Shown: piece by piece, positions 3,803-51,558 of the stretch
Numbering within the stretch: position 1 is the stretch's first letter
How the letters are laid out: each line of letters begins with the position of its first letter
Sequence record: NC_015251.1
Length of the DNA stretch: 64,000 nt
Strand: one strand, 5' to 3'
Notes under the pieces: model-generated
Seen by the model: only the letters and a program-made list of their open reading frames with translations
What the model was told of the DNA's origin: nothing
Databases searched by the model: none
Position numbers and translations under genes: made by a program

Positions 3803-5377
3803 TTAAAAATCTTCAAGTTCATCGGGAGTTGGTTTATAAATAACATCCTTCAACTCTTCATCTATTTTACTTCTTTCTTCTTCGATCTGTTGATCTGTCA
3901 TCTTAAGGATGTTTTTCATTACCGTATCGTGGGAAATATATTTTCCGGTAATCTGGTTCTGAGCCATCATAGATATAATATTGATTCTACGTTCCAATAT
4001 TTCCAAATCCTTCAATTCTTCATAATAGGAATCTTTTGCGTAGACAATACGAATATTTTCTTTTTCCACATCCCATTCTTCTTGGGTCATTACTCCCTTA
4101 AGAATTAGGTTAGTAATTAGTGGGTCATAGAAAATAACATCAAATTGACGCTGCATTCCACGAACAATTTTACTGAATAACAGTTCATCGCGAGTAATAT
4201 CACCGCCAGACGAGAAAGTAACACCACCAGATTCCATAGGGAGACGACTAAGCGGAATTTTCATTGCTTCGAACAATTTACGGTTGAACCAACGAACGTC
4301 ATCCATTTCACCCATAGACTGAGCACCCGGAAGAGTAGATATTTCTGTAGTTGCTTTACCATCACGGCGCATCAACCAAAAATCTTCAGTCATACTTAGG
4401 TTATTTGAGGCAGTTTTAACTTTACCGGTAGAACTATCGTAAACAACTCGGTTTTTGAATCCCTGCATTACTTTGTTTACATGTTCAGTAGCCTTTTTAG
4501 GCTGCATATTACCTACATCAATATAAAATATTCTACGTTCTGGGGCGCGGGTTACACGATATATAACCATCGCATCTTCCAACATCTTCAATTGGTTTGC
4601 TGGTTTAATTGCAGCATGAAGATAACCAATTATAGAACGTCCATCACAAGAAACCTTACCGCTATGTGCGTAAGTCATCGCACTTTTAGGAATGGTTATT
4701 TGGTTGTTATTTGATGTGTTTATATTATTGAAAAGGAAGTTATCAGTACCTGAATACGTGAAATACTCTCTATATCCTTTATAAACCTGAGAACCGTTTT
4801 CGTCTTCTCTAAAGTTTTCTCTATGAAATTGTACCGTTCTTGGATCTAACAATCTAAGCTCAACGATACCTTTCTTTTTATCATTAGGGTCAATCATTTT
4901 ATGGAAGTAAATTCTACTATCTACGTACCATCTACGATATAACCGCTTTCCTTCTTTTTCAAATTTCAAGAGCCGCAATACTTCTTTAAATTCTTCTTGA
5001 ACTAGGTTTTTAACTCTTTCGTTCCATTTTGTGGAATCGAGATTAATAGATACACATTCTTTTTCATCTTCCTGTACTATCGCATCATTGATTATTTCAT
5101 CAATCGCATTATCAACTTCATGATAATTTGTTAGTGAGCGATATTGGTTGATTAATTGACGGGTATTTTGAATTTGGGGGTTTGTCCCGAAAGCATATGC
5201 TTGATACGCTTTATTTGGTGCAGACACATCATTTCTATCTATCGAGTTTGCGCCGTCTGGGTTATCAGGAGCGGCAAAACTATCAATACCTGATGTGAGT
5301 TCTTGCTTTAATTCTTTATCCTCGGATTTTGACCAAGGCTTTAAAAAACTAAGCATATTGAAGTAGCCATTTGCCAT
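3803..5377 (-). CDS. gp20: portal vertex protein gp20
   Basis: EVDNAIDEIINDAIV, YLHAAIKPANQLKMLEDAMVIYRVTRAPERRIFYIDVGN and EDFWLMRRDGK. Confidence 0.97.
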   Translation of the reverse strand: MANGYFNMLSFLKPWSKSEDKELKQELTSGIDSFAAPDNPDGANSIDRNDVSAPNKAYQAYAFGTNPQIQNTRQLINQYRSLTNYHEVDNAIDEIINDAIVQEDEKECVSINLDSTKWNERVKNLVQEEFKEVLRLLKFEKEGKRLYRRWYVDSRIYFHKMIDPNDKKKGIVELRLLDPRTVQFHRENFREDENGSQVYKGYREYFTYSGTDNFLFNNINTSNNNQITIPKSAMTYAHSGKVSCDGRSIIGYLHAAIKPANQLKMLEDAMVIYRVTRAPERRIFYIDVGNMQPKKATEHVNKVMQGFKNRVVYDSSTGKVKTASNNLSMTEDFWLMRRDGKATTEISTLPGAQSMGEMDDVRWFNRKLFEAMKIPLSRLPMESGGVTFSSGGDITRDELLFSKIVRGMQRQFDVIFYDPLITNLILKGVMTQEEWDVEKENIRIVYAKDSYYEELKDLEILERRINIISMMAQNQITGKYISHDTVMKNILKMTDQQIEEERSKIDEELKDVIYKPTPDELEDF

Positions 5378-45903: not shown

Positions 45904-45906
45904 ATA

Positions 45907-45941
45907 AAAAGTTTACAAATGGGTTATATTCGTGAGATAAT
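45907..45941 (+). promoter_or_regulatory. T4 early-type sigma70 promoter
   Basis: AAAAGTTTACA-N15-TGaGATAAT; same architecture at 49510-49544 and 50104-50138. Confidence 0.75.
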
Positions 45942-45956
45942 AACCCTATCAAAGAA

Positions 45957-46041
45957 GCTTGTGTGGTGGAACTGGTATACACATTAGACTTAAAATCTAA
46001 CGCCTTCGGGATTGGGGGTTCGAATCCCCCCACAAGCACCA
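45957..46041 (+). tRNA. tRNA-Leu(UAA)
   Basis: Cloverleaf GCTTGTG/CACAAGC, loop CT-TAA-AA, long variable arm, CCA. Confidence 0.95.
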
Positions 46042-48125: not shown

Positions 48126-49137
48126 TACTATTTGTTCGGTAAGTCGCCAGATTGTTGAATGTGGGGATAAGGTAGTATTGTTGGCTATGGCAAATGGCGC
48201 TTGTATTAGCGCCATCCCATTAAACGCCGTATACGATGATTACGGAGACTTCGATGTAGCAAATGACCTTGGCTATGAATGTTTGTTCAAAAACGTTTCT
48301 ATGCACAACGAAGGCGTTACACATGATAATCTGATGTGTTGTTTGGGTTTAAACTCAGATAAACGGTGGACTGTTCCAAATCTATTTTCTACCACAAAAC
48401 GGTCTGAAATTACTTTGTCTGTCATAAAATCTTCGGTATATGATCTAGTTGCAGAATATGGATCCAGAAAATGGAACTACAAGAAAGAGTATAATTTAGA
48501 TCTTAGTTCCCGTTGGGAAAATCGTACTCCCGAATCTACAGCTAAAAATATAAAAAGGTTGGAACTTCAAATTGAAGAATATAAAAAGATGGATGAAGAA
48601 GACTTTTTAATCAATCATATGTATATGATGATTGATAATTTGAAGATGGGTAACGTTCGCCACCACGAACTATATTCACTTAGTCAGTATGGCGATATGA
48701 TCGATCATTATGCACACCATGATGATTCAACCAAAGCTATATTCGATAATATTGATATTTTTTCCAAATTAGAGGATTTCTTTATTGGTATTTCTGCTCT
48801 GGATATTACCCTTGTTCCTCAAGAATATGGTCGCCAGACAGTAAATCAATTCGAACGAGTTAAGATTTTGACTGATATCCAAATTGCTGGATTCAATCAA
48901 ACGGAAAAAATTCAGTTGACACCAATTGAATGGGATGTTAAAGTACCTTCAAATATAGTTGAAGAGTATACCAAACCTAACTGGTCTAATGAAATTGATC
49001 TTATTCGTATTGGAAATTCTCTTGAAATTACGGACTCGAAATATAATGAGTTTAAACAATACAAATACCCAAATGTTTTCTTGAGTGAAGAATTGGTATG
49101 GCCTAACGGTAATTTTGTTGAAAGTGATATGATATGA
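48112..49137 (+). CDS. hypothetical protein
   Basis: Long ORF starting MGSFNTICSVSRQIV. Confidence 0.8.
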   Translation: MGSFNTICSVSRQIVECGDKVVLLAMANGACISAIPLNAVYDDYGDFDVANDLGYECLFKNVSMHNEGVTHDNLMCCLGLNSDKRWTVPNLFSTTKRSEITLSVIKSSVYDLVAEYGSRKWNYKKEYNLDLSSRWENRTPESTAKNIKRLELQIEEYKKMDEEDFLINHMYMMIDNLKMGNVRHHELYSLSQYGDMIDHYAHHDDSTKAIFDNIDIFSKLEDFFIGISALDITLVPQEYGRQTVNQFERVKILTDIQIAGFNQTEKIQLTPIEWDVKVPSNIVEEYTKPNWSNEIDLIRIGNSLEITDSKYNEFKQYKYPNVFLSEELVWPNGNFVESDMI

Positions 49138-49511
49138 CACATGACTCATTTGTATATACTGTTTATAGTCCATGTTTTTGTATTGATGCAAAAACAAATA
49201 TACCGGTTTGGGGTTATCCTAAAGAAGGGGAACCGCCAATTAACATAATTCATCTAGAGAATCAAAGAGTTTATTTTGATGAGTCGATCCGTATTGATCT
49301 GCACGGTCTTGTAACTGCGGTACTTATGTTTATTAGAGAACGAACCCCAGAAGCAACACATCTTTATATGTACAATATAAATGTGGAACATCAATATGTT
49401 GAATATACTTTCATCAATAAAGAAAAGAAGTTGCGCCTAGCAAGGAGTAATATTCATAATAAAAATACACCTTTTGTTGAAAGTGAATGGTTGACCCCTA
49501 ATGAAAATTAA
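49134..49511 (+). CDS. hypothetical protein
   Basis: ATGA overlap with the previous ORF. Confidence 0.75.
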   Translation: MTHDSFVYTVYSPCFCIDAKTNIPVWGYPKEGEPPINIIHLENQRVYFDESIRIDLHGLVTAVLMFIRERTPEATHLYMYNINVEHQYVEYTFINKEKKLRLARSNIHNKNTPFVESEWLTPNEN

Positions 49512-49544
49512 AAGTTTACAAACCACATTTTGATATGTTATCAT
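49510..49544 (+). promoter_or_regulatory. early-type promoter driving CCA-ended ncRNA
   Basis: AAAAGTTTACA-N15-TGtTATCAT. Confidence 0.75.
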
Positions 49545-49551
49545 TGTTTTA

Positions 49552-49690
49552 GATACGAAAAGGTCGAGCGCGATGCGGTAAGGAAGCAAAGCGGTTACAT
49601 CCTTAATACTGAACCGATTAAGTTACGGCGGATGGACTGGGCTTTGGTAAACGGGGAAGCATAGACCCGAGCACCTGAGTAGTATCACCA
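49552..49690 (+). ncRNA. 139-nt CCA-ended structured RNA (T4 species-1/RNA C-like candidate)
   Basis: 5' GATAC pairs with 3' GTATC followed by ACCA; starts about 7 nt after the -10 box; GC-richer than its surroundings; no ORF. Confidence 0.65.
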
Positions 49691-49708
49691 AATTATGGGA
49701 GTTTATTT

Positions 49709-50104
49709 ATGACACGTAATGAGAAATATAAATTAGGAGTTTCTAAATTTATCAAGAAAGGTTTAACATTGATACAATCTAGTATCATGTATAAACAGAC
49801 AGATCCTGAATGGGAAGAAAAAGACGAAATTTATTGCTACCTAAATAAGGATGATAAAGAGATTTACATTATTAAACGTCTTGGGTCGTGTTGTGGTCCT
49901 TGGCTTAGTGTAAGTTGTCGAATTCTTCGTAGAAAAGGTTATGCGGAATTCAATTTTGATGATACAATAGAAGCTGATTATATGGGTGGTAAACGAACTG
50001 CATATCGTGTGATGTTTACATCCGAACCGGAAGTAGTGTATAATGAAAACTTCCCGTTCTACAAATCGAATCTAATTCAGATTTATGAAAAACTAACCAA
50101 ATAA
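49709..50104 (+). CDS. hypothetical protein
   Basis: RBS GGGAG; 131 aa. Confidence 0.75.
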   Translation: MTRNEKYKLGVSKFIKKGLTLIQSSIMYKQTDPEWEEKDEIYCYLNKDDKEIYIIKRLGSCCGPWLSVSCRILRRKGYAEFNFDDTIEADYMGGKRTAYRVMFTSEPEVVYNENFPFYKSNLIQIYEKLTK

Positions 50105-50138
50105 AAAGTTTACACATCATTGAATATTGTGATATGAT
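50104..50138 (+). promoter_or_regulatory. early-type promoter for tRNA array
   Basis: AAAAAGTTTACA-N15-TGaTATGAT. Confidence 0.75.
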
Positions 50139-50202
50139 GGTTATATCGATGAGTCATCGAACAAACAGTTTTGTGATGTACATCTAGAATGTTTAAACTT
50201 GT

Positions 50203-50279
50203 GCGCTGTTAGCTCAGTTGGATAGAGCAACGTTCTTCTAAAGCGTGGGTCGCTGGTTCGAATCCAGCACGGCGCACCA
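50203..50279 (+). tRNA. tRNA-Arg(UCU)
   Basis: GCGCTGT/ACGGCGC, loop CT-TCT-AA, CCA. Confidence 0.95.
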
Positions 50280-50555: not shown

Positions 50556-50630
50556 TTTGTATGTAACTCAATTGGTTAGAGCACGGGACACAAATCCCGT
50601 AGGATGTTGGTTCGAGTCCAATCATACAAA
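50556..50630 (+). pseudogene. tRNA-like element with 6-nt anticodon loop and no encoded CCA
   Basis: TTTGTATG/CATACAAA stem, normal D and T arms, CGGGA-CACAAA-TCCCG. Confidence 0.7.
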
Positions 50631-50641
50631 AATTTCAAGAT

Positions 50642-51464: not shown

Positions 51465-51558
51465 GGAAGGTCAACCCGACGGTAGGCGACGGGAGCGGTC
51501 TTGAAAACCGCCGAGGCGTAACAGCGCCTTGTGAGTTCGATCCTCACATCTTCCGCCA
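51465..51558 (+). tRNA. tRNA-Ser(UGA)
   Basis: GGAAGGT/ATCTTCC, loop CT-TGA-AA, long variable arm, GCCA. Confidence 0.92.

Follow-up and report, generated by a model that had tools for sequence, protein, structure and literature searches.

A structured RNA element beside the tRNA arrays of Aeromonas T4-like phages

In T4, the gene cluster for transfer RNAs (tRNAs) also encodes two other small RNAs, RNA C (species 1, gene rnaC) and RNA D (species 2, gene rnaD), for which no function has become known in about fifty years (PMC3014915, PMC9697503) and which are both classed as late RNAs (PMC9697503). The element described here occupies positions 49552-49690 on the plus strand (139 nucleotides, nt) of a window of 64,000 nt, which corresponds to bases 62001-126000 of the 235-kilobase (kb) record of Aeromonas phage 65 (GU459069). 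In that GenBank record the interval is devoid of annotation, and falls in the gap between two hypothetical genes, 65p131 on the 5' side (49134-49511) and 65p132 on the 3' side (49709-50104). Comparison with homologues indicates that the element is very probably a genuine structured RNA gene; it appears to represent a new RNA family that, as far as the searches reach, is so far confined to the genera Ishigurovirus, Tulanevirus and Biquartavirus.

Several known RNAs resemble this element in part. T4 RNA C and RNA D share with it a small size (119-139 nt), a non-coding nature, and a location among the clustered tRNA genes of a T4-type phage, and rnaD, like the phage 65 element, encodes an ACCA end followed by AAUU. 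The T4 RNAs, however, stand at the distal end of their cluster, behind tRNA-Arg, while the Aeromonas RNA stands at the head, directly behind a promoter-like site; in addition, rnaC has a T arm of canonical form (GGGUUCGAAUCCC) and folds very stably (z = -4.6), and neither property is present in the Aeromonas RNA. With tRNAs themselves (RF00005) the element has in common a four-arm junction closed by paired ends, co-location with tRNA genes, an NCCA end in phage 65 and, presumably, joint processing, but it is distinguished by the lack of an anticodon arm and of any T-loop or D-loop signature, and by an acceptor-like stem that is interrupted. The put sites of phage HK022 and the boxB-boxA-boxC leaders of rrn work in cis, with RNA polymerase as their target, and are not cut out as closed units. 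Like the Aeromonas RNA, they are structured, immediately follow a promoter and precede a long untranslated unit; unlike them, the Aeromonas RNA has a clamp that joins its ends and, in one lineage, an open reading frame (ORF) downstream, and the sequence match is restricted to a boxA-like word of 7 nt that is buried in a stem. Finally, ROOL and GOLLD are phage and prophage RNAs of 500-800 nt, of unknown function, that display conserved complex folds, lie near tRNA genes, and are represented in Rfam. The Aeromonas RNA is likewise a structured phage RNA located by tRNA genes, but measures about 139 nt and matches no Rfam family.

Conservation and predicted fold

A BLAST search of 50,697 phage records identified the 120-nt core of the element (49558-49677) in about 47 records, all of Aeromonas T4-like phages and none of which annotates it; the matches include the 'Stenotrophomonas' phage IME13. 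Carriers are found within Ishigurovirus (phages 65, 65.2 and avDM6), Tulanevirus (phiAS4, 25, Aes012, Aes508, 50AhydR13PP and others) and Biquartavirus (44RR2.8t, 31, Asfd_1, AhFM11, B614 and others). In pairwise comparisons of five lineages, the cores of different genera are 88.4-97.5% identical for every pair except Asfd_1 and avDM6 (79.8%), while the tRNAs shared by the same phages have a lower mean identity, of 70-83%. The covariance model R1 scores 164.5 bits at 49552-49690, which is its single match in the phage 65 genome. Insertions or deletions of 1 nt occur at three places among the homologues, and thus no reading frame is conserved.

The position of the element is also constant. It adjoins the tRNA array, on the same strand, in all 14 phages examined, and is first in the array in two genera. 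In the phages examined outside Ishigurovirus, tRNA-Leu(UAA), the first gene of the array, follows the terminal stem after 2-7 nt, except in avDM4, where about 460 nt separate the RNA from the nearest tRNA-Leu downstream. In phage 65, the main array is located approximately 510 nt downstream (measured to tRNA-Arg), and an ORF and two further promoter-like sites lie between the RNA element and the tRNAs. A promoter-like site directly precedes the RNA in every lineage.

The consensus fold, derived with RNAalifold and manual inspection, is a four-way junction that is supported by compensatory changes. It is closed by a clamp of two stems, P1, in which GAUAC (49552-49556) pairs with GUAUC (49682-49686), and P2, in which AGGU (49561-49564) pairs with ACCU (49673-49676). 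Within this clamp stand a mini-hairpin, Ha (CGC-NNN-GCG, 49569-49577), which belongs to a 24-nt 5' module, a long bent arm (49587-49646), and a hairpin, P6 (49652-49669), whose CGGG and CCCG strands enclose a nearly invariant 10-nt loop, GAAGYAUAGA. The long arm consists of P3 (49587-49592 with 49641-49646), P3b (49593-49596 with 49635-49638), P4 (49598-49601 with 49631-49634), and P5 (49602-49607 with 49617-49622), and carries a 9-nt apical loop and a 3' bulge of 7-8 nt. The inner AGGT/ACCT pairing and the GGG/CCC hairpin near the 3' end that had been pointed out in an initial annotation of the window are both present, as P2 and as the stem of P6 (49652-49655 with 49666-49669).

The compensatory changes were counted in two alignments. 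In a MAFFT alignment of 13 sequences, to which no model had been fitted, 93.4% of the cells are paired and six pairs are changed on both sides, figures that are reached by none of 500 shuffles. The model-fitted alignment of 14 sequences gives 94.0% paired cells and eight double-changed pairs, as compared to 0-3 in slid controls, again with none of 500 shuffles reaching these values; since the fitted alignment leans towards the model, both sets of figures are given. Every helix is 100% paired in the fitted alignment, apart from P1, which is misregistered. The initial annotation had named a lack of covariation among homologues as one ground for giving up its proposal, and such covariation is indeed found.

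The individual helices contribute to this pattern in different ways. P1 is present in three sequence versions across the lineages, GAUAC/GUAUC, (C)AAAUAAC/GUUAUUU(G) and GAAAUAU/RUAUUUC; each main version is by itself modestly unlikely (p from about 0.004 to about 0.1), and two 5-base-pair (bp) variants, from 50AhydR13PP and avDM4, are weaker than these, but taken jointly the versions argue strongly for the pairing of the two ends. P2 is paired in 14 of 14 sequences, with one change from U-A to U-G, and the stem of Ha is kept (as C-G or U-G) while its three loop bases vary (GAU, AGC, AAG, AAC, AAU). P3 has two compensatory pairs (C-G to U-A, and G-C to A-U); avDM6 adds three more in P4, where CAUC/GAUG becomes UCCA/UGGG, one of the four pairs being a U-G wobble; the closing pair of P6 is C-G in ten sequences and U-A in four. 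The 34 wobble cells, which include two invariant G-U pairs, would turn into A-C mismatches if read from the opposite strand, and this use of wobbles places the structure on the plus strand, that of the tRNAs.

Further pairings were also considered. A kissing pair between AUGC of Ha and GCAU of the P6 loop was rejected, as it is not kept in sequences of the 50AhydR13PP, Aes012 and Asfd_1 types. An alternative hairpin, UGC-GGUAAGGAA-GCA, which would compete with P3, has less support than P3 with its two double compensations. Candidate pseudoknots that would link ACCG of the P5 loop to CGGU or CGG involve invariant bases only.

Taken alone, the phage 65 sequence makes a weak case for an RNA gene. 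Shuffling of the 3' tail produces a 5-bp terminal helix in 171 of 2000 cases (8.6%; p about 0.08), and the minimum free energy of the element, -34.1 kcal/mol, corresponds to z = -0.13; the centroid fold includes P3 and P4, and the consensus structure evaluates to -29.0 kcal/mol. The significance of the element arises from its comparison with homologues, that is, from conservation, covariation and constant position. A first hint of an RNA gene is an island in base composition, with a G+C content of 0.48 in the element, similar to that of nearby tRNA genes, against 0.24-0.38 in the flanks. The only long ORFs that overlap it both begin with TTG: one of 44 amino acids on the plus strand, which begins upstream of the predicted RNA start, and one of 50 amino acids on the minus strand (49437-49589). 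The absence of an anticodon arm and of an ORF, as remarked in the initial annotation, is borne out by the lack of any overlapping call for a tRNA or transfer-messenger RNA (ARAGORN) and by the lack of a conserved ORF among the homologues.

Searches for kin further afield were negative within their scope. The Infernal/Rfam scan and the alignment with T4 rnaC and rnaD, both proposed in the initial annotation, were run and disclosed neither an Rfam family in the element nor homology to the T4 RNAs; for Rfam 15, this holds for a scan of the window at gathering thresholds and for a permissive one (E up to 10) over 49300-50250. BLAST with the most divergent member, avDM6, added no new lineages. R1 detects no copy in three other Aeromonas phages (phiAS5, Aeh1 and PX29) or in KVP40, a Vibrio phage, which is weak negative evidence, since no candidate passed the first filter of the search. 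Aeh1 harbors 24 tRNAs (PMC1524935, Table 1), and the lack of an R1 copy in this phage implies that tRNA arrays do not need the RNA. The invariant blocks of 20 and 23 bases gave no match in exact-pattern scans of prokaryote genomes, one for each of 185,579 species, scans that diverged copies would escape, and the sequences examined bear no sign of a host origin of the RNA. Three pattern scans of IMG/VR returned only known members or the enterobacterial 5' module considered below. Three metagenome matches were set aside as chance, as they share only a 22-nt pattern, score 20-29 bits, have no tRNAs nearby and equal in number the chance expectation.

Nor does a partner gene emerge from the neighborhood. 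The flanking ORFs 65p130-132 match no Pfam family and are common to phage 65 and avDM6 only, in which they are 88-95% identical; the flanking proteins of phage 65 are not common to the other genera, and no conserved neighboring protein gene that could act as a partner was found.

Promoters, ends and mosaic ancestry

In phage 65, the RNA is preceded by a promoter-like site of T4-early/sigma70 type on the plus strand (49515-49544), composed of TTTACA (49515-49520), an 18-nt spacer and an extended -10 element, TG-n-TATCAT, whose hexamer lies at 49539-49544. The site matches at 10 of 12 positions, is among the best-scoring matches between 49000 and 50400 in a sigma70 scan, and is kept in avDM6. 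GATAC (49552-49556) follows 7 nt past the -10 hexamer, and the predicted transcription start, at about 49551-49552, would coincide with the first base of P1. At the other end, GTATC (49682-49686) is followed by A (49687) and CCA (49688-49690). The early-type promoter, its spacing of about 7 nt from GATAC and the GTATC-A-CCA end had all been noted in the initial annotation, and are present where it placed them. Elsewhere in the window, 3.5 kb upstream of the RNA element, a lone tRNA-Leu(UAA) (45957-46041) has its own AAAAGTTTACAAA promoter-like site at about 45910 (45905-45956), whose -35 word is also that of the promoter preceding the RNA.

The other genera display a promoter of a different class. 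In the phiAS4 locus (2470-2500) and 11 others from Tulanevirus and Biquartavirus, P1 is preceded, at a distance of about 7 nt, by an invariant ATAAATAG box of late type, and a sigma70 scan upstream of the RNA in phiAS4 and Asfd_1 detects no site. In phages 31 and 44RR2.8t the box is a perfect TATAAATA, the T4 late-promoter consensus. The RNA would hence begin at the transcription start in every lineage, with the promoter class differing, and the timing of its expression may vary from phage to phage, the promoter being of early type in phage 65 and avDM6 and of late type in the others.

The 3' ends also differ between lineages. A tRNA-type end, with an unpaired A, CCA and an AAUU trailer (49687-49694), exists only in phage 65 and avDM6, which form one lineage, and its processing is putative; the 12 other members lack the encoded CCA, although the phages of the set encode CCA on nearly all their tRNAs. 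The initial annotation had treated the encoded CCA as part of the RNA's identity, a view that does not extend to the family. The CCA end appears to be a lineage-specific solution, because it is in phage 65 and avDM6 that an ORF, rather than tRNA-Leu, lies downstream, and that the RNA ends in ACCA-AAUU. Among the tRNA genes of the window, 16 of 17 real ARAGORN calls end in NCCA followed by an A/U-rich trailer (tRNA-Gly ends in UCCA), the exact AATT occurring in five.

The 3' end of T4 rnaD (1551-1560 of the T4 locus) and positions 49686-49696 of the phage 65 window share an 11-nt end, CACCAAAUUAU, with CCA and an A/U trailer, which suggests a common 3'-processing signal rather than homology. 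Two unannotated tRNA or tRNA-like genes were also noted in the phage 65 array. The first (50556-50631, between tRNA-Gly and tRNA-Met) is called 'tRNA-???' by ARAGORN, with a 2-base anticodon and no CCA end, and scores 45.5 bits with the Rfam tRNA model; in avDM6, ARAGORN makes no call between tRNA-Gly and tRNA-Met. The second is a tRNA-Ser(UGA) of 94 nt (51465-51558) that narrowly passes the Rfam gathering score for tRNA-Sec (47.7 versus 47), most likely only on account of its long variable arm.

The ancestry of the locus appears to be mosaic. Between phage 65 and phiAS4, which belong to different genera and whose shared tRNAs average 70% identity, the core is 97.5% identical; between phage 65 and its sister phage avDM6 the figure is only 85%, even though the tRNAs of these two are 96% identical. 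The promoter, P1 and the 3' tail are, by contrast, nearly identical between phage 65 and avDM6, and the similarity to other genera begins at AAAAGGUCG and ends at CACCUG, inside P1. These relationships imply either that the core was exchanged between co-infecting phages or that one lineage diverged fast under compensation; P1 would be supplied locally, needing only to pair. tRNA-Ile, tRNA-Ser(GCU) and tRNA-Thr are 95-96% identical across genera, and it seems that RNA genes are exchanged among Aeromonas phages.

Part of the element has a counterpart outside Aeromonas phages. The 24-nt module, AAGGUCGAGCGC-NNN-GCGGUAAGG, recurs with 23 of 24 positions in Klebsiella Jiaodavirus, in Erwinia phage FBB1 and in two 175-kb IMG/VR contigs, within a conserved, unannotated intergenic element of about 130 nt, on the transcribed strand of T4-like phages (1440-1572 of the locus in Klebsiella phage KP179, and 1444-1574 in that of FBB1). 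It is absent from T4, phiAS5, Aeh1, PX29 and KVP40. The Klebsiella/Erwinia element thus has in common with the Aeromonas RNA the module, an ACCU partner for AGGU, an intergenic position and the transcribed strand. It differs in forming a three-way junction in which ACCU lies 5' of AGGU and GGUAAGGGG pairs with CCUUUUCC, in being located just upstream of a GTTTACA promoter-like site, while the Aeromonas RNA is downstream of its promoter, and in having neither the long arm nor P6, so that R1 assigns it only 16-20 bits. The BLAST E-value of the module match is only 0.5, yet common descent of the 5' sub-module is plausible because of its intergenic position, its strand and the retained ACCU partner. 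A second R1 match in KP179 (122490-122571) lies inside a coding sequence and was discarded as spurious.

A proposed stand-alone RNA and its competitors

The data can be brought together in a scheme in which the element is a stable RNA that acts in trans. Transcription would start at the first base of P1, and the 3' end would be made by the tRNA-processing machinery: in most phages, cleavage by RNase P at the 5' end of tRNA-Leu(UAA), 2-7 nt after P1, would free the RNA, while in phage 65 and avDM6, where an ORF follows, the RNA would rely on its tRNA-type ACCA-AAUU end. The clamp would hide both ends, so that the RNA would accumulate, and the near-invariant junction and loop bases would offer a binding surface through which it could act on a protein. 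The partner would most likely come from the Aeromonas host or be a phage factor peculiar to this group of phages, with the RNA serving as decoy, sponge or component of a ribonucleoprotein. To this whole chain, in which the tRNA-processing machinery releases a stable RNA that binds a protein and acts in trans, we assign a probability of roughly 0.55.

Different observations speak for the separate steps. Its own promoter, the end clamp, two modes of 3'-end formation and independence from the downstream gene favor a stable RNA that stands alone over a leader, and the ORF and promoter-like sites that precede the tRNAs in phage 65 imply that the RNA is not tied to a tRNA. The near invariance of unpaired junction and loop bases suggests that they serve a specific tertiary fold or a surface for protein binding. 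Restriction to three genera of Aeromonas phages, together with lateral exchange, suggests a host-linked accessory role, a character that fits with the apparent absence of the RNA from Aeh1, phiAS5, PX29, KVP40 and T4. It could tentatively be suggested, as a more specific possibility, that the RNA is a host-specific counter-measure, namely a decoy or inhibitor of an Aeromonas protein involved in defence or in RNA metabolism; it would then be a cassette passed between unrelated T4-like phages of Aeromonas, each of which would express it from the promoter class at its disposal.

A number of points weigh against the proposed trans-acting RNA. Sequence diversity is low (87% mean column identity), and the pairs that make up P2, P5 and most of P3b are invariant and hence uninformative; the high identity of the core could stem partly from recent lateral exchange rather than from constraint. 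Folding energies of single sequences are no better than those of shuffles (z from -0.13 to +0.53). The late-type promoter of the other genera is a match of 7-8 of 8 positions to TATAAATA that was judged by eye, and the start, end, stability and expression of the RNA are all predictions from sequence. Finally, with no conserved protein gene in its vicinity, nothing points to a binding partner.

Among competing explanations, the one that survives best, though it is unlikely, is that of a cis-acting 5' leader of the tRNA unit, whose structured 5' end could shield the long untranslated precursor from decay that depends on the 5' end, isolate the first tRNA as it folds, assist RNase P or act in antitermination in the manner of rrn and put. 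The element lies where a leader would be expected: a promoter-like site immediately precedes it, the array's first tRNA follows in two genera at a distance of 2-7 nt, and P1 would occupy the extreme 5' end of the transcript. It also includes UCCUUAA, which resembles the core of rrn boxA. This boxA-like stretch, however, is inside the fully paired P5, and a simple 5' stabilizer would not need 120 nearly invariant bases. The ORF and promoter-like sites that intervene before the tRNAs in phage 65 and avDM6 argue against the same idea, as does Aeh1, whose many tRNAs are encoded without a copy of the element.

It is quite unlikely that the element is a CCA-ended tRNA mimic, a possibility considered in the initial annotation, that would be recognized by RNase P, the CCA-adding enzyme, a synthetase or tRNA-targeting host defences and act as a decoy. 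The location among tRNA genes, the four arms in cloverleaf order with a 5-nt linker before the last hairpin, and the succession of stem, unpaired A, CCA and AAUU, which in phage 65 and avDM6 resembles that of their tRNAs, are all in keeping with mimicry. The proportions, however, are wrong, with a 'D arm' of 3 bp and 3 nt, a 'T arm' of 4 bp and 10 nt without T-loop sequence, a 3-nt linker between 'T arm' and acceptor, and an acceptor stem split by an internal loop of 4 x 5 nt; the apical loop does not follow the anticodon-loop pattern, keeping neither U33 nor a purine at position 37. The element yields no Rfam tRNA match at E values up to 10 and no ARAGORN call, and the 12 sequences without CCA come from phages in which almost all tRNAs encode it.

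A riboswitch-like sensor, with an aptamer in a 5' leader that would control tRNA-Leu or 65p132, is improbable. The size of the RNA, its promoter-proximal site, the closing P1, the covarying stems and the near-invariant junction are typical of aptamers, but no terminator-like site follows the RNA in phage 65, phiAS4 or Asfd_1, and in most phages the tRNA begins as little as 2-7 nt after P1, the downstream unit being variable (a tRNA or an ORF). In phage 65, moreover, no segment of the element is complementary to GGGAG, the ribosome-binding site of 65p132, and the element matches no Rfam riboswitch.

Descent from a common ancestor with T4 rnaC (139 nt) or rnaD (119 nt) is highly improbable, being largely refuted at the level of sequence and secondary structure. 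The length of the element equals that of annotated rnaC, its neighborhood is a tRNA cluster, the CACCA end of rnaD is followed by AAUUAU, and rnaD shares the short words GGUCG and CGGUAAG near its 5' end. In the MAFFT alignment, however, there are no common blocks, the matches being scattered and the invariant columns numbering ten, and the best hit of R1 on the T4 tRNA locus and whole genome (E = 1.3) falls at an unrelated site, 5211-5291. The T arm and stable fold of rnaC have no equivalent here, and the place in the array is first rather than last. Of the analogy or homology to the T4 RNAs put forward in the initial annotation, there remains the positional analogy, that of a non-coding RNA associated with a tRNA cluster; homology is supported neither by the alignment nor by the covariance model.

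Lastly, Seg endonucleases are known to frequent the tRNA regions of T4-like phages, segB being annotated in that of T4, and the mosaic core testifies to lateral exchange, but a DNA-level element kept alike by recombination, such as a homing-endonuclease target or a recombination hotspot, is hardly credible, as compensatory substitutions keep six helices paired, strand-specific wobbles would be meaningless in duplex DNA, the G+C island is tRNA-like, and a promoter-like site lies directly upstream in every lineage.

Implications for phage tRNA arrays

The Aeromonas RNA would constitute a second family of small stable RNAs in phage tRNA clusters, unrelated to T4 RNA C and RNA D. Reviews of T4-type phages mention that these have yielded neither a characterized trans-acting RNA nor a characterized riboswitch. 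Structured RNAs of this kind within phage tRNA arrays are skipped by annotation pipelines.

The system is also experimentally handy, as the RNA is short, has a well-defined fold, and is encoded by culturable phages of a fish pathogen (65, 25, 31 and 44RR2.8t, among others), while natural variants such as avDM6 already bear compensatory changes. Lateral exchange and host restriction suggest that its role is selectable and linked to the host. The role of stable RNAs in phage tRNA arrays has been a question since the 1970s, and if the RNA were indeed a counter-measure against an Aeromonas protein, it would provide a handle on the role of such small RNAs, including T4 RNA C and RNA D.

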